64,000 bases of DNA, taken from the IMG/VR virus record IMGVR_UViG_3300043418_000114, positions 62,001-126,000 of that record; one strand, written 5' to 3'. The position numbers were made by a program, and so were the translations under genes. Under the pieces are notes generated by a model that saw only the letters and a list, made by a program, of their open reading frames with translations, made no database searches and was not told the origin of the DNA. Below, piece after piece: positions 10,181 to 64,000 of this stretch; the first letter of the stretch is position 1; the number at the start of each line of letters is the position of its first letter.

Positions 10181-10208
10181 TTTCACGTAATAGATAAATA
10201 TAACATAT

Positions 10209-10260
10209 ATCTCATAGGGAGATTTATGCAGTACCCACTGCGTAGCGGCTAGAACCCGCA
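10209..10260 (+). promoter_or_regulatory. Structured 5' leader (three consecutive hairpins)
   Basis: ATCTC/GAGAT, TATGCAGT/ACTGCGTA, GCGG/CCGC between late box 10195 and RBS of gene 10282. Confidence 0.55.
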
Positions 10261-10281
10261 ACTCATTTCAAAGGAAAACAA

Positions 10282-11661
10282 ATGGGACGTCCTCTAAAAA
10301 TTTCGAAAGCTGTCTTGTTAACAATGACAGGCACAGCATCAGCAACTGGTTTAGTAACTGTATCTGAAAACTTAAACACATTGAATATTATCGCTGGTAT
10401 GCCATTCACACCAAACGTTAATCGTGGTGGTTTAGTTGCTGGTACTACTTACTATGTTCTACAAGTTGTTTCTGCAAATACATTCACTGTTTCTGCAACC
10501 CAACTAAGTGCTAACCCTGACTCTACACCAGTAACGTTAACAAACTCATCAACATCAACTGTATTGACTGTTGGTTTCACTGACACTGGTTTCAACAACC
10601 CAGACAACTCTAACACAGCCGCACCTAGTGGTTCTAACGCATCATTCGGTGTCGTTGGTGGTAACACTGGTATCTATGGCAAGCAAGTTCTAGCGAACGT
10701 TGCATTCGGCGTTGAAGGTCAAGGTCGTGTAATCGCTGATACCGGTAGCAATATTGTTGTTGGTTATGGTACTGACTTTGCAAACATTGCAACAGGTACA
10801 CACTTGTATGCACACTGGGGAGATGATCCTGCAGTTCAACAATTGCTAGGAACCACAACTTCTACAGCAGGCGATGTGACTGTTGCAGTTGCTAACACAA
10901 ATGCTACTGGCAACGTTATCCGCACAACAGGCAATGCTCAAACACTAGTATTGAATGGTCCTGTTAATTTCAGTGCTAACTTAGGTGGTCTAATCACTGG
11001 TACAACTTACTGGGTTAAGTCTATTGCTAACGCAAGTGCTTTCACAGTTTCTGCAACACCATCAGGTGCAACATTCGGTCTATCAAGTGCGACTGGTACA
11101 CCAGATGCCACACAACAGCAAATCGTATTGGCAGCCGTATCAGCGAACAACGCAACTGGTACAAACGGCACAGGCGATACATTCGTTCAAGCTCTTCCAG
11201 AAGCAGGCTACATCTTGCGTCAAAAGGGTAAGACAAAGTATTTGGTACAAGGTACTGTAACTGGTATCGTTGGTGCTGCCTACACAGCTAACGTTGCTAA
11301 CACAGCGTTGACGCCAAACACAATGTCAATTATCTCCACAAATGCCGCATCTGGTACTAACTACATTTCTTCATTGAATGACTATCAATCTGAAACATTC
11401 CCAGCGCAAGTTGCGGCAGGTTCATTGTCAGCTGGCACTCAGTATGTAATCTATAATACAGGTACAACAGATTGGACAGCAGTTGGTGCACCATCTAATA
11501 TCACTGGTGTAACATTCACTGCTACAGCAACTGGTTCTGGTACAGGTACTGCAATCTTGACTACAGCTAACCCAGATGTAATCGCTACATTCGTAACAGC
11601 GTATGCGGCAAATACATATGGTGGCCAAACAACTCCAGTCGTAGTTATTAACAACGCTTAA
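10282..11661 (+). CDS. Virion structural protein with repeated beta-barrel modules
   Basis: MGRPLK N-terminus, YILRQKGKTKYLV core, two GGL(V/I)xGTTY(Y/W)V modules; biased codons. Confidence 0.65.
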   Translation: MGRPLKISKAVLLTMTGTASATGLVTVSENLNTLNIIAGMPFTPNVNRGGLVAGTTYYVLQVVSANTFTVSATQLSANPDSTPVTLTNSSTSTVLTVGFTDTGFNNPDNSNTAAPSGSNASFGVVGGNTGIYGKQVLANVAFGVEGQGRVIADTGSNIVVGYGTDFANIATGTHLYAHWGDDPAVQQLLGTTTSTAGDVTVAVANTNATGNVIRTTGNAQTLVLNGPVNFSANLGGLITGTTYWVKSIANASAFTVSATPSGATFGLSSATGTPDATQQQIVLAAVSANNATGTNGTGDTFVQALPEAGYILRQKGKTKYLVQGTVTGIVGAAYTANVANTALTPNTMSIISTNAASGTNYISSLNDYQSETFPAQVAAGSLSAGTQYVIYNTGTTDWTAVGAPSNITGVTFTATATGSGTGTAILTTANPDVIATFVTAYAANTYGGQTTPVVVINNA

Positions 11662-17743: not shown

Positions 17744-17907
17744 TGACACGTGATACCGGATATGCGATTCTGTTAGGGTTCGTAATTTGTACCATCGTTC
17801 ATACTCTGCCGTTTACTGATTCAGAACAGTACCGCAGAGCCATCAAAGAATGTGAAAGAACTCTACCAAGAGATAAACATTGTAAAGTTATTGGAGTACC
17901 AGAATGA
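17743..17907 (+). CDS. Small membrane-anchored protein (54 aa; below ORF-track cutoff)
   Basis: MTRDTGYAILLGFVICTIVHTLPF...; start and stop overlap both neighbours and fill the gap exactly. Confidence 0.7.
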   Translation: MTRDTGYAILLGFVICTIVHTLPFTDSEQYRRAIKECERTLPRDKHCKVIGVPE

Positions 17908-18789: not shown

Positions 18790-19203
18790 ATGACACAAAA
18801 TATCGATTTGAATAAATACACTAAATTCGTTGACGCTGTAACTAGCAAAGAATCAAACAACTTTGATCACATGTTACCACGAGTCAATGAACTCCGCAAC
18901 ACAACCAACGTAAACGTCAGTCTATTACTGACTGCATGTTTGGGACTCCCTGCTGAAACAGGCGAATTCGTTGAAATTCCTAAAAAGATTTTCTTCCAAG
19001 GCAAGCCACTCACTGATGCAGAAATCTTCCATATGAAACGTGAACTAGGCGATATCATGTGGTATTGGATTCAAGCATGTCGTGCCCTGAATCTTGATCC
19101 TAATGATGTTATCGACGAGAACGTTAGAAAACTAGAAGCACGTTATCCAGGCGGCTCCTTTGATGCTCACTACAGTGAGAATCGCCAAGAACACGATATC
19201 TGA
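18790..19203 (+). CDS. mazG: MazG-like nucleotide pyrophosphohydrolase
   Basis: GLPAETGEF, RELGDIMWY, NVRKLEARYP. Confidence 0.85.
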   Translation: MTQNIDLNKYTKFVDAVTSKESNNFDHMLPRVNELRNTTNVNVSLLLTACLGLPAETGEFVEIPKKIFFQGKPLTDAEIFHMKRELGDIMWYWIQACRALNLDPNDVIDENVRKLEARYPGGSFDAHYSENRQEHDI

Positions 19204-19204
19204 T

Positions 19205-19429
19205 ATGGCTCCTTGGAACGAAGAAGGTCTTTACCTATTCACTGTCGAGGAGTATAATCAACTCCCCGACGGCATCGAATTAACGTGTATCATGGACGAT
19301 GAAAAAGCTATCAAAGGCAAAGACTGCATCGACCTAGATACACGATTCGGACACATCGCTTACGGTGTCTATCATCCATGGGAACATGAGTTGAAAGACC
19401 TGTTCTTGGTTTTCAAACTCAAAGAATGA
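19205..19429 (+). CDS. Hypothetical protein (start moved to ATG 19205)
   Basis: ORF immediately after mazG stop. Confidence 0.6.
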   Translation: MAPWNEEGLYLFTVEEYNQLPDGIELTCIMDDEKAIKGKDCIDLDTRFGHIAYGVYHPWEHELKDLFLVFKLKE

Positions 19430-19644
19430 GAAGTCCTGTTTCTGATAAGGAATGGAATGACTTTATTGCTAGAAAAATGACAGTTTCACCTTGGCAAGAG
19501 TTTTATGCATGGAGACCTGTCAAAGTACACGGCAAGTGGGTTTGGTTAGAAACAGTATACCGACGTTGCATTAACACATATGTTGATATGGATAATTGGA
19601 AACGGTACGAGTACGGCACAATCTTTGATGTGCTAACAAATTAA
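19426..19644 (+). CDS. Hypothetical Trp-rich protein
   Basis: ATGA overlap; WQEFYAWRPV...WVWLE. Confidence 0.65.
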   Translation: MRSPVSDKEWNDFIARKMTVSPWQEFYAWRPVKVHGKWVWLETVYRRCINTYVDMDNWKRYEYGTIFDVLTN

Positions 19645-19659
19645 TATTATTGACTAATA

Positions 19660-20020
19660 GGTATCCGCTACCTCGAAATGCGGCGAAACTCCGTCCTCAT
19701 CGTGCAGTGGCGGTAGATTGCATGGTCAATGCAGATTTATGGGACTACCATTTGATGCTTAAACGTCTACCCCCTGTGTAGAAACGTTTCCCATATCTTA
19801 ATAGTTGATGTTGCCAGGTCATAGTAATTGCGATAGAGGGCCTGGGCTGTGTGTAGAATCCCGATGAATTTATCTACACTTAACAGCGAAAACGGAAAAG
19901 CCCCATTTGGGTCGGTGAGACATAGACAATCCTCCACTGTAATCTTTTAATTCATCGTCGCCTCGACCCCTCAAGAATGTCGAAATGGTGCGTAGATTCA
20001 TATCTACTCGCCATTTCCTA
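19660..20020 (+). ncRNA. Candidate large structured non-coding RNA, family unknown
   Basis: No ORF in track over ~400 nt; at least 7 helices, G-U pairs on plus strand, 9-nt loop-to-distal complement. Confidence 0.7.
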
Positions 20021-20076
20021 AGAATATCGAATTCAATTAGGTGACTAAATACATGTATTATAGGACACTTAATTCC

Positions 20077-20862
20077 ATGGCAACAACACTTTTATCAACA
20101 CCTAATGGTTTAACATTAGATGAACTTAAGCAAACAGTATTTAAAAACATACGATTACGTCTTGGTGATGGTATTATTGACCTTGAGTTGGACCCTGAAC
20201 ATTACGAAGCGGCATATAACTACGCCATTAAGATATATCGTCAAAGAGCGCAGAATTCCACGGCGGAATCCTACATTTTAATGACTGTAGAAAAGAACGT
20301 AGACATTTACACCCTTCCACAAGAAATCATTAACGTTCGTTCCTTATTCCGTAGAAACATCGGCATGGAGACAGGCCCTGGCGGTAGCGCATTTGATCCA
20401 TTCAGCTCCGCTATCTTAAACACATACCTATTAAATTATAACTATGCGGGCGGTATGGCAACCTATGACTTCTATGCAGGTTATGTTGAGTTGGCGGCAC
20501 GTATGTTTGGTGGCTATGTTATCTATACATTCGATCCTGTTACCAAGGCCTTACGCATTGTACGTGATCCTAAAGCCACTGGTGAGCATGTGCTTATCTG
20601 GGCTGACGTTCAACGCACGGAGGAAGTACTCTTACAAGACCCAGGAGCAGGCGTTTGGATCACTGACTGGATCTATGCTACCCTTAAGGGAACAATCGGC
20701 GAAGCACGTGAGAAGTTCGGTACGATTGCGGGTCCTGGCGGTGGCACAACATTGAATGGTACTGCCATGAAGGCTGAATCTAAAGCAATGCAAGAAGCAT
20801 TGATTGACGAATTGAAACGTTATGTGGATTTCAGTCAGCCACTAACTTGGATCCAGGGATAA
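20077..20862 (+). CDS. Neck protein (T4 gp13-like)
   Basis: LRLGDGIIDLELDPEH, EAREKFGTIAGPGGGTTLNG; late box and RBS. Confidence 0.75.
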   Translation: MATTLLSTPNGLTLDELKQTVFKNIRLRLGDGIIDLELDPEHYEAAYNYAIKIYRQRAQNSTAESYILMTVEKNVDIYTLPQEIINVRSLFRRNIGMETGPGGSAFDPFSSAILNTYLLNYNYAGGMATYDFYAGYVELAARMFGGYVIYTFDPVTKALRIVRDPKATGEHVLIWADVQRTEEVLLQDPGAGVWITDWIYATLKGTIGEAREKFGTIAGPGGGTTLNGTAMKAESKAMQEALIDELKRYVDFSQPLTWIQG

Positions 20863-21653
20863 TGAGAGCAAAAGAATTTATTTACGAACATGCGGCCCAG
20901 GATTATTCCGAGTACAGCAAGGAATTCAACGGCCTAGATATGTCTGTTCAACTCAACAACAGAACTGGCAATTTAACAATCATGGCTTATGACGATGGTC
21001 AGCTACTAGGACAAGTTCTATTCAAATTACACGGCGGTACCAAACTATATCCATGGCAATTAGAAGTACAACCTCAATTTCGTGGAAAAGGCATCGCAAA
21101 GACAATGTATGATTTTGTAAAGGGCGAAGGCTTTACGATTCAACGTAGTGTACATCAAACTGATGCGGGTTCCGGATTCTGGGACAAGCATCGCGGTAAA
21201 TCATCAACTGTTTGGGAAGATACTGAATCCAGAGATACTAATTTCAAACAGTGGTTCGGTAATAGCAAAGTGGTGAATGTCCAAGGTAAGCCATTGGTAG
21301 TTTATCATGGCACAGACAAAGATTTCTCACATTTTGAGTCAGCATCTGGTGTTTACTACTTTACACCGGATGCGGAGTACGCAGGTACAGGCAGTCATTC
21401 TGCTCGTGGTGACCGTCAACTAATGCCAGTGTACTTGAGCATTCAAAATCCAGCCGTTATAGATTCTAGAGAACAATTAACTGCCAAGACAGTTAATAGA
21501 TTACGTCAGAAAGGATATGACGGCGCAATCGGAAAGATCAACGACTATATTTTTGAGTACATAGCATTTTACCCAACTCAAATAAAATCTGCAATCGGCA
21601 ATATTGGTAAATTTGATTCAAATAATGCTGATATAACTGCTGAATCTTTATAA
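20862..21653 (+). CDS. Two-domain effector: GNAT acetyltransferase + ADP-ribosyltransferase-like (polyvalent-protein type)
   Basis: MRAKEFIYE start; VQPQFRGKGIAKTMY (GNAT motif A); FKQWFGNSKVV...VYHGT...YFT...QIKSAIGN. Confidence 0.75.
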   Translation: MRAKEFIYEHAAQDYSEYSKEFNGLDMSVQLNNRTGNLTIMAYDDGQLLGQVLFKLHGGTKLYPWQLEVQPQFRGKGIAKTMYDFVKGEGFTIQRSVHQTDAGSGFWDKHRGKSSTVWEDTESRDTNFKQWFGNSKVVNVQGKPLVVYHGTDKDFSHFESASGVYYFTPDAEYAGTGSHSARGDRQLMPVYLSIQNPAVIDSREQLTAKTVNRLRQKGYDGAIGKINDYIFEYIAFYPTQIKSAIGNIGKFDSNNADITAESL

Positions 21654-22801: not shown

Positions 22802-25800
22802 ATGGCATTAACATCTCCAGGCGTACAAGTAACCGTAACGGACGAAAGTCAGTATTTACCTGCGCCAACAAACTCAGTTCCTCTTGTTGTTCTAGCTACA
22901 GCACAAAATAAAGCAGACCCTACAGGTACTGGTGTTGCTCAAGCTACTACAGCGGCGAACGCGGGTAAACTATATCAAGTAACAAGCCAGAGAGATTTGG
23001 TATCTTTGTATGGTACCCCATTCTTCTATACAACTTCAAATGGTACACCAATTCAAGGTTACGAATTGAACGAATACGGTCTACTAGCGGCATATAGCTT
23101 GCTAGGTGTTACAAACCGTTGTTACGTTCTACGTGCTGACATTGACTTGGCTAGCTTGGTAGGCCAAACAGGTCGCCCAACTGGTGCACCTGCAGACGGC
23201 ACATGGTGGTTAGATACTACAAACTCAACATGGGGTATCTTCTCTTTCAACCAAACAACTGGTCAATTCACTTCTCAAAATCCTATCGTTATTACTGATT
23301 TACAGTATCTAACTGGTGGCGTAGCGACAGGTGTTCCAGTAGCTAGTTTGGGTAACGTTGGTCAGTATGCAGTTGTTGCAATTCAACCAACTACGTTGAA
23401 TCCTGTAAGCGCAAGTACATATTACTACAAGACCACGGCAAATGAGTGGGTAGTAGCAGGTTCAGTTGATTGGTTAGGTGATATTCCTACCGTTACTGGT
23501 ACTGCAAGCAACCCAACACTAACAGCTGGTAACCAATTCGGTATCGGTGTAGATGGTTACTTCTCTGCAACCATCACTGTTCCAAACAGTCCAAACAACA
23601 CTATTGCTGGTGTTGCGAACGCAATCAATGCTTTAGGATATGCAGATATCAAAGCGGCAGTACGTTCTGGCAAGTTGTGCATTTTCTCTGAACAAACAGA
23701 AAATAGCCCAGTAGCTAGCGATTATATCGTGATTAGTCAAATAAGTGCGTACACTGTATTGACTGATATGGGTATCTCAGCTGGTACATATCGTCAACCT
23801 GCTTTATCATACGGCACTTCTGCACAGATGCCATTGTGGCAAGCAAGCCAAGCACAACCACGTCCTACTGGTTCAGTATGGATCAAAGTTGGCGCATCTG
23901 GCAACGGTTTAAACCCAGTAGTATCTCAGTATTCAAGTGCAACTGCTTCATGGAAAGCAAAATCTGTAGCACTAGGCACTTCTGACTGGGAAGTTAACTC
24001 TACATTAGACAGCACTGGTGGCAAGATGATTCCAGCAGGCACCGTCTATGCTCAGTACTTCTATGACAACTACTACAACTTGGCTCCAATATATCTATGG
24101 GAGCGTATCGCTACAGGTCCAACTGTAGTAACAGGTACAGAAACAACAGTTTCAACACCAGGTGGTGATGTTTTCGTAACTGTAAGTTTACCAGGTGAGC
24201 CAACAATTAACAATGGCGGTTATACTGTCTCTGTTACAGCAAGTGGCGATGCAACTGATTTCGTAACTGCATGGACTAGCGCAAACATTCCATACACAAC
24301 TGCTACAGTAACAACAAGCGGTGCAGTTCAAATTACCCATACCGCAGGTGGTGCAATCCAACTTACCGATTTTAGTGATAACTTGGGTGCCCTAGGTTTA
24401 GTGGCAGGTGTTACAACTGGTGTAAAGTATGGTGAAGGTATCTCCATTCCATATCGTGTTACTCAAACTTCTACAACTGGTAGCGGTACAGGCGCACATA
24501 TCAGTTTGACTTCATTGTACGGTGAGTACTATCTAGATGGCGACGGCATTGCTTCAGGTGACGGTGGTTCAGGCTACGCAGTTGGTGATAGCATCACTAT
24601 CGCTGGTACATCATTAGGTGGCACAACTCCAGCAAATGACTTAATTGTGAAAGTTGCATCAGTTAGTGGTGGCGCAATCACATCAGTTACATTCGTATCT
24701 GGCACAGCACAAGTTTACTTGACAACAGTATTCAGTAACTGGGTATCATTTGATTACACAGCTAACGAAGGTGCACCAGTAGCGATTCCAGCTAACAATA
24801 CAAACTGGTTCTTCTCAGTTGTTGATCAAGTTGATATCATGGTTAACTATGGTGGAAACTGGAAAGGCTATCGCAACCAACAGTATGACTTGAACGGTTT
24901 CCCTATGACTGGTTCAGGCAATACTGATCCTAACGGTCCTATCGTATCTCCAAGTGAGCCAACAACACAAAGTGATGGCACTGCATTGGTATATGGTGAC
25001 TTGTGGATCAACACAACCGATCTAGAAAACTATCCAGTAATCAACCGTTGGCAATCTGTCAACAACGTTGATCAATGGGTAACTCTAAACAACGCTGACC
25101 AAACAAGTTCAACTGGTGTATTGTTTGCCGATGCACGTTGGGCAACAACTGGTGACGTTAACCCAGCGAATGATCCAATTCCATCTATCACTAGTTTGCT
25201 AACAAGCAACTACTTAGACATTGATGCTCCAAGCTCAAGTTTGTATCCAAACGGTATGTTGATTTTCAACACACGCCGTAGTGGTTATAACGTCAAGCGT
25301 TATGCAGTTAACTACTTCAATAGCGCAAGTTTCCCTAACGATGATATCCCTGCTCAAACTGATGCATGGGTTTCTGAGAGTGGTCTACAAGCTAACGGTG
25401 CACCATACATGGGTCGTAAAGCACAACGTAACATGGTCGTCAAGGCTCTACGTTCTGTAATCGACACAAACACTGATATCCGTGACGAAGATAACTTCTT
25501 CAACTTGATGGCTACACCTAACTATCCAGAACTACAACCTAACATGGTTGTGTTGAACGCAGATCGTGGCGAAACAGGCTACATCATTGGTGATACACCA
25601 ATGCGTCTATCTGATAGTGCAACTGATATCCAAGCATGGGCAACTAACGCCGCCGGCGCAGAAGCTACAGGTGAAGATGGTCTAGTTACACGTAACACTT
25701 ACTTGGGTCTATTCTATCCAAGTGGTATTACAAGCGACTTGTCAGGTAACTTAGTTGCCGTTCCAGCATCACACATGATGCTACGTACATTCCTACGTAA

Positions 25801-26350
25801 CGACACTATTAGCTATCCATGGCTAGCGGCCGCCGGTACTCGTCGTGGTACTATCGACAACGCTACAAACATCGGTTATATCGATAGCACAACAGGTGAA
25901 TTCATCACTATCAAGACTCGTCTTGGCATTCGTGATGTATTGTATATCAATGAAATCAACCCATTGGTATTCTTCACTGGTATCGGCTTGTTGAACTATG
26001 GTAACAAGAATAGCTTCAATAGCTCAAGTGCATTGGATAGAACTAACGTATCTCGCTTGGTTGCTTATATCCGTAGACAACTAACACTAGCAGGTCGTCC
26101 ATTCGTGTTCGAACCTAACGATCAGTTGACTCGTCAACAGTTCACTGGTGTTGTTCAATCCTTGATGGTTGACTTGGTTGCTAAACGTGGTCTATACGAC
26201 TATCTAGTTGTATGTGATGACTCTAATAACACTCCTGCTCGTATCGACAGAAACGAATTGTGGTGTGACGTTGCAATTGAACCTGTTAAGGCCGCTGAAT
26301 TCATCTATATCCCAGTTCGTATTTTGAACACAGGGGCATCATTGAAGTAA
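22802..26350 (+). CDS. Contractile tail sheath protein with large insertions
   Basis: MALTSPGVQV N-terminus; PWLAAAGTRRG, INPLV, FVFEPND, AIEPVKAAEFIYI C-terminus. Confidence 0.95.
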   Translation: MALTSPGVQVTVTDESQYLPAPTNSVPLVVLATAQNKADPTGTGVAQATTAANAGKLYQVTSQRDLVSLYGTPFFYTTSNGTPIQGYELNEYGLLAAYSLLGVTNRCYVLRADIDLASLVGQTGRPTGAPADGTWWLDTTNSTWGIFSFNQTTGQFTSQNPIVITDLQYLTGGVATGVPVASLGNVGQYAVVAIQPTTLNPVSASTYYYKTTANEWVVAGSVDWLGDIPTVTGTASNPTLTAGNQFGIGVDGYFSATITVPNSPNNTIAGVANAINALGYADIKAAVRSGKLCIFSEQTENSPVASDYIVISQISAYTVLTDMGISAGTYRQPALSYGTSAQMPLWQASQAQPRPTGSVWIKVGASGNGLNPVVSQYSSATASWKAKSVALGTSDWEVNSTLDSTGGKMIPAGTVYAQYFYDNYYNLAPIYLWERIATGPTVVTGTETTVSTPGGDVFVTVSLPGEPTINNGGYTVSVTASGDATDFVTAWTSANIPYTTATVTTSGAVQITHTAGGAIQLTDFSDNLGALGLVAGVTTGVKYGEGISIPYRVTQTSTTGSGTGAHISLTSLYGEYYLDGDGIASGDGGSGYAVGDSITIAGTSLGGTTPANDLIVKVASVSGGAITSVTFVSGTAQVYLTTVFSNWVSFDYTANEGAPVAIPANNTNWFFSVVDQVDIMVNYGGNWKGYRNQQYDLNGFPMTGSGNTDPNGPIVSPSEPTTQSDGTALVYGDLWINTTDLENYPVINRWQSVNNVDQWVTLNNADQTSSTGVLFADARWATTGDVNPANDPIPSITSLLTSNYLDIDAPSSSLYPNGMLIFNTRRSGYNVKRYAVNYFNSASFPNDDIPAQTDAWVSESGLQANGAPYMGRKAQRNMVVKALRSVIDTNTDIRDEDNFFNLMATPNYPELQPNMVVLNADRGETGYIIGDTPMRLSDSATDIQAWATNAAGAEATGEDGLVTRNTYLGLFYPSGITSDLSGNLVAVPASHMMLRTFLRNDTISYPWLAAAGTRRGTIDNATNIGYIDSTTGEFITIKTRLGIRDVLYINEINPLVFFTGIGLLNYGNKNSFNSSSALDRTNVSRLVAYIRRQLTLAGRPFVFEPNDQLTRQQFTGVVQSLMVDLVAKRGLYDYLVVCDDSNNTPARIDRNELWCDVAIEPVKAAEFIYIPVRILNTGASLK

Positions 26351-48739: not shown

Positions 48740-48775
48740 CTGTGATAAATACTCTATTATAATGGAGTATTTACC

Positions 48776-48943
48776 ATGGCAAAGATTGTCGAAACCGTAT
48801 TTGTAGTTAAACTAAGTCAATTAGTAAGAGATAACCCGATAGAATGTGATTCTACTGGGTTTGATGACCTTCCAAAGACGATTGAAGAAGTAGTACAGCA
48901 ACTAGTAGCTAGTGACGTTTTAGTTGAAGTGGAACGTGCATAA
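48776..48943 (+). CDS. Small hypothetical protein (55 aa; below ORF-track cutoff)
   Basis: MAKIVETVFVVKLSQLVR...VEVERA; late box, GGAG RBS, stop overlaps next ATG. Confidence 0.75.
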   Translation: MAKIVETVFVVKLSQLVRDNPIECDSTGFDDLPKTIEEVVQQLVASDVLVEVERA

Positions 48944-63064: not shown

Positions 63065-64000
63065 ATGAAAAAACTTTTAGCAACACTCACACTAGTTATA
63101 TTACCTTTGTTCGCATTCGCATGGGAACCATCTAAGCCGGTGACTGTTATTGTGGGTAACACACCTGGAGCAGGCAACGAAATCGCATTTAGGAAACTAG
63201 CAGAGATTGTGCAGAAACAAAACCCAAAGTTTGTTTATGTCGTACAAAACATTCCAGGTGCTGATTCTGTGGTAGCAAATAATAAGGTACTAGATGCTCC
63301 GACTGACGGCTATACAATCAATTTGCCAAGTCATATGAGTTCATACGTGACTAATGATATTTGGGAAAAGAAAGTTAAAAAGTATCAATGGGATAGTTTC
63401 ATCGACGTACTTACAATGGGTAAGAGTCCTCTGGTATTGGTCGCTAGTACAAAAAGTAATGTTAACACGCCAATCGACTTCATTAGATATCTGCATACTT
63501 CTACAAAGCCGATTAATATCGCAGTAGGTGGTGGAGCACACAGAACAGCATATGAGTATTTGATGGAATCTGCACATGGTGACAAGAATCTAATCACCCA
63601 CGTGAAGTTCAATGGTCCGATGCCAGCAGTGTCGAGCGTAGCACAATATGATGGTAAGACGGGTACAGAGTTCGGTATCATACCAATTGCAGTTGCTCGT
63701 TCGTTGATTGATGCAGGTAAAGTTAAACCTATCGGATTCACTGGCACAAGACACATGCCGCAATACCCAGATGTTCCGTTATTGAACACAGTAGCACCTG
63801 GGATTAACGTGTATGCCGCATGGTCAATTCAACTGCCACCTAACACTAACAAAGAGATTGTAGATTGGTATCAAAAAGCATTTAGTACCGCAGTACGTAG
63901 TAAAGAATATGCAGAATGGTGCAAATTAAATGTAGTGTTCTATTCAGAAGACGAATTGACTCCGGTTGGTCTAAAGAAACACATGCAAGAATTACGCACA
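63065..64000 (+). CDS. tctC: Tripartite tricarboxylate transporter substrate-binding protein (Bug/TctC), runs off window end
   Basis: GGAGG RBS; signal peptide MKKLLATL...AFA; KPVTVIVGNTPGAG, NIPGA, PTDGYTI, YPDVP; absent from ORF track because no stop in window. Confidence 0.85.
   Translation, partial: MKKLLATLTLVILPLFAFAWEPSKPVTVIVGNTPGAGNEIAFRKLAEIVQKQNPKFVYVVQNIPGADSVVANNKVLDAPTDGYTINLPSHMSSYVTNDIWEKKVKKYQWDSFIDVLTMGKSPLVLVASTKSNVNTPIDFIRYLHTSTKPINIAVGGGAHRTAYEYLMESAHGDKNLITHVKFNGPMPAVSSVAQYDGKTGTEFGIIPIAVARSLIDAGKVKPIGFTGTRHMPQYPDVPLLNTVAPGINVYAAWSIQLPPNTNKEIVDWYQKAFSTAVRSKEYAEWCKLNVVFYSEDELTPVGLKKHMQELRT

Follow-up and report, generated by a model that had tools for sequence, protein, structure and literature searches.

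A large, multi-pseudoknotted RNA of uncultured freshwater phages that very probably represents a new structured RNA family

Large RNAs whose intricate folds have been proven by covariation are rare. They include the group I and group II introns, RNase P RNA, tmRNA, GOLLD, ROOL, OLE, HEARO and raiA, and nearly all of the large ornate RNAs that have been characterised are machines, acting as a ribozyme, as a guide or as an RNA-only assembly. GOLLD (RF01998) and ROOL (RF03087) are large, ornate and multi-pseudoknotted non-coding RNAs that are carried by phages and prophages as accessory elements and whose function is unknown. GOLLD was first observed in lake metagenomes. GOLLD, ROOL and OLE form homo-oligomers (PMC12286853). 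In this study we analysed a 64-kb stretch of phage DNA (the window), in which an intergenic element encodes an RNA that shares several of these traits.

The element occupies positions 19645-20040 (396 nt), the largest stretch of the window without an ORF of at least 60 aa (the runner-up is 203 nt), and its GC content is 0.44-0.45 in comparison to 0.41 in the whole window and 0.29-0.41 in the other gaps. The initial annotation, made without homologues, had singled out this stretch as the largest ORF-free gap and as more GC-rich than the others, and both statements held. It had also proposed a structured plus-strand non-coding RNA of about 360 nt; this held as well, the RNA being slightly longer (Table 1). 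The conservation and the covarying pairs start at 19650 and stop near 20027, and the nhmmer and covariance-model matches span 19645-20040 and 19806-19962. When folded as a single sequence, the element had only a mild advantage over shuffled sequences (z = -2.7 for the plus strand and -1.9 for the minus strand), and therefore the proof of a structured RNA rests on the comparison of homologues. The presence of ORFs of 33-56 codons on both strands could suggest that the element encodes one or more small proteins. However, no ORF was conserved among the members: the longest open frame switches strand and frame from one member to another, the indels among close relatives are mostly of 1-2 nt, and the substitutions track base-pairing and not codon periodicity. 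This reading is effectively refuted and can be all but excluded.

About 100 homologues of the RNA (64 of them unique, with 57-88% identity) were recovered from IMG/VR phage contigs with two independent sequence patterns and then confirmed by nhmmer and a covariance model; each locus carries one copy. The host phages are jumbo myoviruses, distant relatives of Atu_ph07, PA5oct and Rak2, and the four ncRNAs reported for PA5oct sit at loci other than the site of this RNA. No match was found among the cultured phages of INPHARED when three divergent members were used as blastn queries, and the nearest cultured phages share only about 40% identity in Ad2, the head-tail adaptor encoded downstream. 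No copy of the RNA turned up in the 185,579 species genomes of bacteria and archaea in GTDB, where a search with a degenerate 19-mer retrieved 14 matches, all of them due to chance. A metagenome scan likewise returned 14 matches, three of which were true members, all from the second clade that had already been found. Thus, in the searches made, the RNA is confined to uncultured freshwater phages and is phage-only. No description of it was found in the open literature that was searched; the 10,006 unnamed candidate RNAs of Fremin et al. 2023 were outside this comparison.

The comparison with known families was likewise negative. When the window was scanned with Rfam 15 (4227 models) at the gathering threshold, the only match was freshwater-2 at 10208-10284. 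At E ≤ 10 the region 19500-20200 gave only a chance miRNA match outside the element, and in ten diverse homologue loci (11 members counting the window's copy) nothing overlapped the element. ARAGORN detected no tRNA or tmRNA gene in the 64-kb window. The RNA thus belongs to no catalogued Rfam 15 family. The initial annotation had seen no hallmarks of tRNA, tmRNA, RNase P or group I/II introns, which held in the sense that Rfam gave no match at E ≤ 10 and ARAGORN found none. It had proposed an Rfam scan and a covariation test on collected homologues as checks; the former gave no match to a known family even at E ≤ 10, and the latter revealed strong covariation.

The covariance-model alignment behind the pair statistics covers the 3' core of the RNA only (33 pairs). 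In this alignment 97.0% of the cells were standard pairs, compared with 36-45% when the partners were slid, and compensatory changes were present in 27 of the 33 pairs. Moreover, the covariation score of the 3' core was 0.567 versus 0.180 in shuffles, and none of the 500 shuffles equalled it. RNAalifold found compensatory changes in 29 of 45 pairs. A covariation scan based on APC-corrected mutual information recovered the pseudoknots without prior assumption, the slid controls being low. The fold shown by these data comprises about 13 helices, two three-way junctions, four pseudoknots and about 50 Watson-Crick-type covarying pairs. Two of the pseudoknots connect the 5' tail with the loops of H3 (PK3) and H1 (PK0), and in PK1 and PK2 the loops of H8 and H7 pair with strands located 80 nt and 175 nt further downstream, respectively. 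The loops include UUCG and GNRA types, GNRA-capped peripheral hairpins have been gained and lost between lineages, and the 5' and 3' ends are not paired with each other. On the plus strand G-U cells far exceed A-C cells (50:1 in H7, 18:0 in H2 and 49:9 in H11), which shows that the RNA is read from this strand, as had been deduced from the wobbles in the initial annotation. We consider it very likely that this is a genuine new structured RNA family.

A DNA-level element, either a single-stranded DNA fold or a protein-bound site serving as a replication origin or in packaging or recombination, was the alternative envisaged by the initial annotation if covariation were absent. The intergenic position at a module boundary would suit such an element, and single-stranded DNA tolerates G-T wobbles too. 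However, the approximately 50 covarying pairs, the H-type pseudoknots and the UUCG/GNRA loops indicate RNA; in addition, iterons and other repeats are lacking, as is an AT-rich region for unwinding, the GC content is above the window mean, and the element is dispensable in close relatives. With covariation found, this alternative is disfavoured and appears very unlikely.

Table 1. Features of the RNA and its flanking genes (positions are those of the window).
Feature	Position	Strand	Remarks
72-aa ORF	19426-19644	+	Upstream neighbour; stop codon abuts the RNA
Whole conserved structured RNA	~19648-20028	+	~380 nt
PK3 5' strand	19650-19654	+	UUGAC, UUGGUC in most relatives; pairs with H3 loop 19724-19728
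5' H-type pseudoknot	19659-19683	+	PK0 AGGU 19659-62 / ACCU 19670-73, interleaved with H1
H1 hairpin	19665-68 / 19680-83	+	CCGC / GCGG; variants CCAC/GUGG, ACACAC/GUGUGU
H2 hairpin	19691-19713	+	CCGUC 19691-95 / GGCGG 19709-13, inner pair 19698-19704
H3 hairpin	19719-19733	+	Loop is the PK3 3' strand; variants UGCAU/AUGCA, GUGU/ACAC, GCGU/ACGC
First three-way junction	19738-19795	+	H4 19738-44/19789-95, H5 19748-54, H6 19762-70/19778-88
Conserved joining strand AUCUUAAUAGUUG	19796-19813	+	After the first three-way junction
H7 hairpin	19814-19845	+	18-nt conserved loop AUAGUAAUUGCGAUAGAG; 99.7% standard pairs, 6/7 compensatory
PK2 5' strand	19828-19833	+	Within the H7 loop; partner 20008-20014
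H8 hairpin	19846-19887	+	GCUG + GUGUAGA / UCUACAC + CAGC; 15-nt loop holds the PK1 5' strand
PK1 5' strand CGAUGAAUU	19862-19870	+	Pairs with 19949-19957
Second three-way junction	19896-19948	+	H10 around H9 and H11
H10	19896-900 / 19944-48	+	AAAAG / CUUUU; compensatory 5/5 pairs; 19896-19948 = CG 30 / AU 20 / UA 9
H9	19902-11	+	Compensatory 3/3 pairs
H11	19913-20 / 19933-39	+	Loop AGACAUAGACAAUCCUC near-invariant; compensatory 4/7 pairs
PK1 3' strand AAUUCAUCG	19949-19957	+	Partner of 19862-19870
Repeat R1 CCUCAAGAAUG	19968-19978	+	
U-rich tract and terminal hairpin H13	19979-20013	+	Tract is UCGAAAU here; H13 is GGUG-GUAGAU / AUCUAC-CGCC
PK2 3' strand UCGCCAU	20008-20014	+	Overlaps H13 lower stem; position 20010 common to both
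Repeat R2 CCUAAGAAUAU	20017-20027	+	3' limit of conservation
Late-promoter-like motif TGACTAAATAC (TGATAAATAC in relatives)	20042-20052	+	T4-type; outside the RNA
Head-tail adaptor Ad2 (gp13-like neck) gene	20077-20862	+	Downstream neighbour; phrog_211, E = 2.6e-25

In the 5' half of the RNA, 90% of the PK3 cells were standard pairs (slid controls 6-42%) and all four pairs showed compensatory changes, with GC 43 / AU 17 at 19652-19727 and GC 47 / AU 10 at 19653-19726. PK0 is kept in the variants GGGC/GCCC (lineage L089) and AAGU/ACUU (the L168 clade). H2 consists of 96% standard pairs and varies as CCCAC/GUGGG and CCGCC/GGCGG; H3 has received a large insertion in some clades. The strands CUACC and GAUGCUUAAA, which join the helices of the first three-way junction, are almost invariant. 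H4 contains 100% standard pairs, 7/7 of them compensatory, and H6a 98% standard pairs; H5 is variable and is expanded in relatives, where it carries UUCG or GNRA caps. Position 19803 (A or G) covaries with the H4 pairs 19740-93 and 19741-92, a pattern that looks like a base triple; this remains a possibility inferred from the covariation. Several clades have a GNRA-capped hairpin (cap GUAA, GCAA or GCGA) inserted after 19807. For PK2, the counts were UA 34 / AU 27 at 19829-20013 and CG 57 / UA 6 at 19831-20010.

In the 3' half, the two helices of H8 contained 100% and 96% standard pairs, with 9/11 compensatory. PK1, with 98% standard pairs (slid controls 16-49%) and 6/8 compensatory, covaries in several independent lineages, and its whole helix has been swapped in the forms AAUGUUUC/GAAACAUU, AAUGAUUC/GAAUCAUU and AAUGAAUC/GAUUCAUU. 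This was the only pseudoknot named by the initial annotation, and at least three more were found. Among the helices that it had listed, TGCAT/ATGCA, TATGGGA/TCCCATA with the enclosed AAACG-TCTAC/GTAGA-CGTTT, CCAGGTC/GGCCTGG, GCTG-GTGTAGA/TCTACAC-CAGC and CGGTG/CACTG were supported by compensatory changes in the homologues. The last hairpin, GTAGAT/ATCTAC with UGG/CCA, held too, except for its outer GAAAU/AUUUC extension, which is specific to this phage. CCGCTAC/GTGGCGG failed, the covarying pairs forming two hairpins instead (19665-68/19680-83 and 19691-95/19709-13), and TCGAC/GTCGA (19963/19979) is not conserved.

The repeats R1 and R2 (CCUMAAGAAU) change in parallel in at least six lineages (L111, L089, L168, L171, L176/L178 and L101). 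The adjacent U-rich tract is complementary to both of them in relatives and was the sole match in an internal search for their partners; in L111 it forms a perfect 8-bp pairing with R2 (UUAUUAGG/CCUAGUAA). In the window's own copy the U tract is replaced by a different pairing. In H13 only the 5' strand varies, in ways compatible with pairing to the invariant 3' strand. The 3' strand of PK2 overlaps the lower stem of H13, and the two pairings therefore compete. It should be kept in mind that the evidence for the U-tract/R2 pairing and for a switch consists of A/U-rich complementarity in a handful of lineages. As potential antisense targets, complements of R1 and R2 were not enriched in the window. 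We infer that the 3' domain (R1, R2, the U tract, and the H13 base versus the pseudoknot with the H7 loop) may adopt alternative pairings, and that it would probably be the interaction or switch end of the RNA, binding a protein, an RNA or a ligand.

In the first clade the RNA lies after a block of PTH2-like, kinase and MazG genes and before the late-promoter motif of Ad2. This motif is located 20-25 nt before the Ad2 start codon and is conserved in relatives with and without the RNA. The window contains 15 occurrences of GATAAATA, compared with 3.2 expected, and one of these precedes the tail-tube gene. A second, unrelated phage lineage carries the RNA upstream of small ORFs and TerL (the terminase cluster), with 130-280 nt to the next ORF, and its neighbours are unrelated to those of the first clade. 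This synteny is shown, as is the distribution among close relatives: among the 80 loci closest in Ad2 about 10 have the RNA, and in the other approximately 70 separate intact genes flank a spacer of about 55 nt. The presence and absence of the RNA among these loci indicates that it is an accessory, self-contained module, dispensable in close relatives. Homologues of the 72-aa ORF directly precede the Ad2 promoter in phages without the RNA as well, and both the 72-aa and the 89-aa ORFs are found with and without it. Consequently, and given the unrelated neighbours in the second clade, these ORFs were rejected as a conserved neighbouring protein. To our knowledge, the RNA is not known to have any partner or activity, and the functions suggested by the initial annotation (ribozyme, decoy or scaffold) remain suggestions only, without activity data.

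At 20 or more loci the RNA is preceded, at a distance of 0-5 nt, by the end of a terminator-like hairpin that carries a U run. These loci have no room for a sigma-70 promoter, and therefore production of the RNA needs either read-through or an unrecognised promoter. A promoter and terminator scan of the window detected neither at the RNA, and no terminator after it. The initial annotation had placed the RNA at the end of an early operon (PTH2, kinase, MazG); the position after this block was confirmed, but the end of the operon is only loosely true because many relatives have the terminator-like hairpin upstream and a late-promoter motif precedes the neck gene. The evidence for expression is weak, and both transcription and the transcript ends are inferred. 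In one metatranscriptome (X21) a contig of a relative, 338 nt long, covers 19694-20026 and nothing beyond, ending at 20026. In another (X20), which contains the same phage at 100% identity, contigs lie over mazG and Ad2 and none over 19121-20107; this hole is not proof of an absent transcript.

The best explanation in our view is a phage-encoded plus-strand ncRNA of about 380 nt from an uncatalogued family, which would act as an accessory module inserted after the end of the early/middle MazG block and ahead of the neck gene's late promoter. It would most likely be produced early, when transcription from upstream reads through or the upstream transcript is processed, and would then accumulate as a free-standing, compact molecule acting in trans. 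For this last step, the free-standing and trans-acting mode, we see as much reason for doubt as for belief. Since the RNA is a 'moron-like' accessory module located at the transition from early to late genes, a role in host takeover or counter-defence is worth considering, although only as a possibility.

As a rival, we considered that the RNA acts in cis where early and late genes meet, as a leader or insulator that is riboswitch-like on read-through transcripts. In this case the alternative 3' pairings would gate the expression of the downstream neck and structural genes or block it when premature. In two or three unrelated lineages a structural or packaging gene cluster follows closely downstream, invariably in the orientation of the RNA, and the mutually exclusive 3' helices of the RNA, each of which is compatible with the covariation, resemble an expression platform. 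However, the RNA is separated from Ad2 by the conserved late-promoter motif, and therefore late transcripts would exclude the RNA, which is thus not in a 5' UTR. The switchable helices are not followed by a terminator or a sequestered ribosome-binding site, and in the second lineage the next ORF is 130-280 nt away. Moreover, of the 80 relatives that are closest in Ad2, about 70 lack the RNA and yet express these genes, and with 380 nt and four pseudoknots the RNA far exceeds known leaders in size, being several times larger than known aptamers. A riboswitch or leader was rejected on the intervening promoter motif, the missing terminator and the lack of ribosome-binding-site sequestration, the transcription start being placed by motif only; this rival is unlikely.

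Another rival is a catalytic RNA, for which catalysis would have to be inferred. It could be a ribozyme that cleaves or processes itself and so leaves the early transcript, or else a mobile ribozyme of an intron-like type, whether novel or degenerate. The size, the multi-pseudoknot core, the covariation resembling base triples and the GNRA-capped peripheral hairpins are typical of large ribozymes, and conservation begins on the 5' side right next to the terminator or stop codon located upstream, as though cleavage had set this boundary. Group I introns (RF00028, T4-type) share with the RNA its size, a pseudoknotted core, triple-like covariation and optional GNRA-capped hairpins; they too occur in T4-like and large myoviruses, and the presence or absence of the RNA at one exact site among close relatives resembles the polymorphism of such mobile introns. 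The short motifs GACUA, AUAGUC and UAGACAAUCC recall the group I R/S elements. However, no ribozyme or intron model of Rfam matched at E ≤ 10 in 11 diverse members, RF00028 included (without a positive control on a T4 intron). Mapping onto P1-P9 by hand failed, since the helix order does not fit P3-P4-P6-P7-P3'-P8-P7' and is unlike P3-P9; the order derived from covariation is one of successive hairpins, the loops of which pair further downstream, without P3/P7 interleaving. In addition, the site is intergenic, between the stop codon or terminator and the Ad2 late-promoter motif, so that no gene is interrupted and there are no exons to join. A homing endonuclease ORF is absent, and the metatranscriptome contigs examined gave no evidence of cleavage, joints or ends at the element. 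A group I intron was rejected on these grounds, and a catalytic RNA in general seems improbable.

Resemblances to smaller motifs were rejected as well. The hammerhead-like CUGAUGA in the H8 loop is not conserved, belongs to PK1 and covaries. The resemblance of UAUGG/CCUAAG to the GAAA-tetraloop receptor fails, UAUGG being paired in H4 and variable, and CUUUUAA, which looks like the anticodon loop of tRNA-Lys, is paired in H10 and varies.

An assembly RNA, either an RNA-only homo-oligomer or a phi29-pRNA-like ring at the portal or neck, is a further rival, in which some of the 'pseudoknots' would be intermolecular and oligomerisation is inferred. Sequence alone cannot tell cis from trans for strongly covarying loop-strand pairings, a single U tract has two identical partners in R1 and R2, which could permit domain swapping, the RNA adjoins the neck gene or lies upstream of terminase genes, and GOLLD, ROOL and OLE offer a precedent for homo-oligomers (PMC12286853). 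Like this RNA, phi29 pRNA (RF00044) is phage-encoded, has covarying loop-loop pairings and is linked to head and neck assembly genes. In contrast, pRNA measures about 120-174 nt, has another architecture and belongs to small podoviruses. A phi29-type pRNA was rejected because no model matched at E ≤ 10, the hosts here are jumbo myoviruses and the RNA is dispensable among close relatives. The models of GOLLD and ROOL showed no homology either, the approximately 70 of 80 closest relatives (by Ad2) that build virions without the RNA speak against an essential packaging role, palindromic loops are absent, and experimental data are lacking. We regard an assembly RNA as unlikely.

Our preferred reading therefore remains the phage-encoded accessory ncRNA. 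A bolder version is possible, though not likely, in which the RNA represents a new class among the large functional RNAs and serves jumbo phages either as a new-fold ribozyme or as an RNA assembling with itself or at the neck or portal, through the covarying loop-strand pairings and the duplicated R1/R2 arms. For its size the RNA is unusually dense in long-range pairings, its 380 nt containing four pseudoknots. Its fold is already defined by about 64 distinct variants found in nature, and its genomic setting is clean and phage-only. It is therefore usable for structure determination, and it also serves the question of what large phages do with ornate RNAs.

Several known systems of similar size or setting can be compared with it. 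tmRNA and bacterial RNase P RNA are alike in their length of about 360-380 nt and in having several pseudoknots. tmRNA was rejected (none by ARAGORN, ends unpaired and hence no tRNA-like end pairing, no tag ORF), and so was RNase P RNA, no model of which matched at E ≤ 10. GOLLD and ROOL are longer (about 600-800 nt versus about 380 nt), and their covariance models did not match at E ≤ 10; unlike them, the RNA described here is not located beside tRNA genes but has a fixed site between MazG and the neck gene. If the bolder reading were true, it would be a third kind of phage 'ornate RNA machine' besides pRNA and GOLLD/ROOL. The RNA thus resembles GOLLD and ROOL in kind, as a large pseudoknotted, phage-borne and accessory RNA, but not in family.

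The largest ORF-free stretch of the window (396 nt, with the runner-up at 203 nt when ORFs of at least 60 aa were counted) had a GC content of 0.446 versus 0.41 window-wide. Both its size and its GC-richness had been stated in the initial annotation, which proposed here a structured non-coding RNA of about 360 nt with a long-range pseudoknot. On the evidence of homologues and covariation we hold this finding as real and its interpretation as essentially right. The single-sequence fold was only modestly better than that of shuffled sequences (z = -2.7 for the plus strand and -1.9 for the minus strand). Thus, the structural case depends on the comparison of homologues.

Similar sequence was present upstream of the gene for Ad2, a gp13-like head-tail adaptor, in only about 10 of the 80 closest Ad2 loci in IMG/VR, and in the remaining loci about 55 nt separated the upstream gene from Ad2. 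A search with an invariant 17-mer retrieved 84 loci, about 76 of them full-length homologues (67-88% identity), and a second, independent pattern from the loop of helix H7 added 16 homologues, some clearly diverged. The de-duplicated set comprised 64 distinct sequences with 57-84% identity to the window, and nhmmer found a single copy per locus, including one in the window.

Nearly all helices showed compensatory changes when the homologue alignment was inspected by eye, and RNAalifold on 52 sequences revealed double changes in 29 of the 45 predicted pairs. A covariance model restricted to the 3' core (33 pairs) scored 94-185 bits on 65 loci and matched none of 19 Ad2 loci lacking the RNA. In its alignment 97.0% of cells held standard pairs, as against 36-45% for slid partners. 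Of the 33 pairs, 27 had changed on both sides, and none of 500 shuffles reached the observed covariation score (0.567 versus 0.180 shuffled). Two of the proposed helices lacked support: CCGCTAC/GTGGCGG, which resolves into two local hairpins, and TCGAC/GTCGA. Plus-strand polarity, inferred earlier from wobble pairs, held, as G-U far exceeded A-C (50:1 in H7, 18:0 in H2 and 49:9 in H11). In addition, indels between close relatives were mostly 1-2 nt long, and the longest open frame switched strand and frame between members. This implies a plus-strand RNA, and a protein gene was rejected; a DNA element is a very improbable explanation.

APC-corrected mutual information, calculated on a structure-blind MAFFT alignment, placed the helices found by the other methods at its top ranks, together with long-range pairs. 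The proposed long-range pseudoknot (PK1) held, and in diverged members the whole helix was exchanged, e.g., to AAUGUUUC/GAAACAUU. A triple-like signal was also detected, the joining-strand position 19803 tracking two base pairs of helix H4, and optional hairpins were capped by GNRA or UUCG loops. The feature very probably represents a new family of RNAs whose tertiary fold is dense.

Features of the RNA and its surroundings (window positions)
Feature	Position	Strand	Remarks
ORF-free gap	19645-20040		396 nt
Next largest ORF-free gaps	48740-48942; 63178-63340; 17744-17903		203, 163 and 160 nt
Covariance model, 3' core	19806-19962		
PK0	5' tail with H1 loop	+	H-type pseudoknot
PK1	19862-70 with 19949-57	+	98% standard pairs; 6/8 pairs compensatory
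PK2	H7 loop 19828-33 with 20008-14	+	mutual information
PK3	5' tail 19650-54 with H3 loop	+	mutual information
H10	19896-900 with 19944-48	+	closes three-way junction; mutual information
R1	19968-78	+	direct repeat, one flank of terminal hairpin H13
R2	20017-27	+	direct repeat, other flank of H13
R1 = R2 variants			AGUAAUG, L111; AGGAAUG, L089; AGAAGAU, L168; AAGCAG, L171; AAGAAA, L176, L178; UGCUGAUU, L101
Upstream genes, in order			PTH2-like ORF, AAA_28 kinase, MazG, small ORFs (89 and 72 aa)
Downstream genes, in order			Ad2, GNAT-ART fusion, dNMP kinase, tail sheath
GNAT-ART ORF	20847-21653	+	
Tail sheath gene	22802-26350	+	1182 aa
GATAAATA example sites	26387; 15808 (minus strand); 10193; 2076; 3516		
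Freshwater-2 RNA	10208-10284	+	RF02980
Hairpin and U-run families			L102, L110, L146, L170, L099, L109; L151, L108, L161, L138, L160, L158, L082; L085, L118, L134, L157

At least six lineages show the same change in both direct repeats, R1 and R2, and a few lineages are exceptions. The U-rich tract from R1 to H13 is complementary to both: in members with longer spacers R1 folds back onto it, and in others it is able to pair with R2 (e.g., the perfect UUAUUAGG/CCUAGUAA in L111); in the copy of this window the local pairing at this site differs. Independently of this, position 20010 covaried with the H7 loop (CG 57 / UA 6) and was also compatible with a partner in the lower H13 stem, which makes PK2 and that stem mutually exclusive. 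The 3' domain could therefore adopt alternative conformations, although this is inferred from few events in A/U-rich sequence.

The window derives from a 364-kb contig of a jumbo myovirus. In this clade the order is constant: mazG, up to two small ORFs, the RNA, a late-promoter-like motif, Ad2, dNMP kinase and sheath. The 72-aa ORF was seen also in loci without the RNA, and is therefore not its obligate partner. The GNAT-ART ORF, directly after the neck gene and present in only a few relatives, encodes a GNAT acetyltransferase domain joined to an ADP-ribosyltransferase domain of the ART-PolyVal type (Pfam E = 1.2e-20). The sheath is unusually long, with a Thr/Gly/Ser-rich middle, and standard sheath profiles match only its C-terminal part.

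In loci with and without the RNA, 20-25 nt separate the motif (C)TGATAAATAC from the Ad2 ATG downstream of it. With 15 occurrences versus 3.2 expected, GATAAATA is about 5-fold over-represented in the window, and it closely precedes structural genes, e.g., that for the tail tube. The T4 late promoter is TATAAATA. By this likeness GATAAATA is probably a T4-type late promoter of the clade, an inference from sequence with no start site mapped. In at least 20 loci with mazG or the 89-aa ORF as the upstream neighbour, the RNA is preceded at a distance of 0-5 nt by a terminator-like hairpin with a U run; if the neighbour is the 72-aa ORF, its stop codon abuts the RNA. Thus, a stop or terminator flanks the RNA upstream and a promoter motif flanks it downstream; a sequence scan recognised no promoter or terminator of its own. 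That the RNA is a cis-acting boundary element is an unlikely rival reading. The hairpins fall into three distinct families filling the 30-60 nt from mazG to the RNA, the last U being 0-5 nt from the first conserved base. In relatives without the RNA (L007, L010, L028, L033, L042 and others) an inverted repeat (about 9 bp; TTTCCTGAT AAATACAAT ATCAGGAAA) surrounds the late-promoter motif about 45 nt upstream of the start of Ad2, so that a hairpin could form in the promoter or at the 5' end of the mRNA.

The RNA also occurs in a second lineage of phages, unrelated to the first (L094, L101, L168, L171, L176, L178), where small unknown ORFs follow it and TerL or a virion protein lies 2-3.5 kb further, and in a third context on a 277-kb contig (L150). 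No homologue was found in cultured phages or in bacterial and archaeal genomes (one per species, n = 185,579; all 14 pattern matches were due to chance), and the three members gained from a metagenome scan belonged to an already-seen clade. The RNA is therefore an accessory, horizontally spread module found in phages only. In L176 (~2700-2930), L168 (6652-6936) and L171 the ORF directly upstream of the RNA has LELFLKW(I/M)P as its conserved C-terminal tail, with an additional ALWDPARKTWYV motif in L176, and is unrelated to the window's 72-aa ORF.

Conserved 31-mers of the family were present in many metatranscriptome runs, and contigs of four runs were aligned to the window. In run X21 a 338-nt contig (94% identity) spanned exactly 19694-20026 with the flanks uncovered, which would be compatible with a discrete RNA ending near 20026. 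In run X20, contigs with 100% identity to this phage covered mazG and Ad2 (depth about 20-25), but none lay over 19121-20107, a coverage hole that proves nothing. Within 19000-20700, Illumina adapter sequence marks the end or start of two phage-identical X20 contigs, at positions 19120 and 20108, and these bracket about 1 kb that includes the RNA. Because only the single X21 contig offers support and X20 has a hole, expression remains plausible but not shown.

ARAGORN detected neither tRNA nor tmRNA anywhere in the window. The sole Rfam 15 match, freshwater-2 RNA (62.7 bits), was outside the gap, which had none even at E ≤ 10; the confident Rfam hit that the initial annotation named as refuting novelty was thus absent. 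Freshwater-2 begins 8 nt past a GATAAATA motif (10193-10200, plus strand) and may therefore be a late-transcript 5' leader in this phage. Tests for group I introns, RNase P, tmRNA, GOLLD, ROOL, pRNA and every small ribozyme in Rfam were negative, and the order of the helices, together with the location between genes, rules out a conventional intron. A ribozyme and an assembly RNA are further unlikely readings. The likeliest mode of action, which we hold at about an even chance, would be that of a free-standing RNA made early and acting in trans, whose 3' interaction domain is switchable. Full-text searches found no description of the RNA; the tables of one 2023 IMG/VR screen were outside this check, and the RNA may be one of the candidates left unnamed there. 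It has no homology to GOLLD and ROOL and is about half their size, but these are its closest likeness in kind, being large, ornate, phage-borne, accessory and of unknown function.
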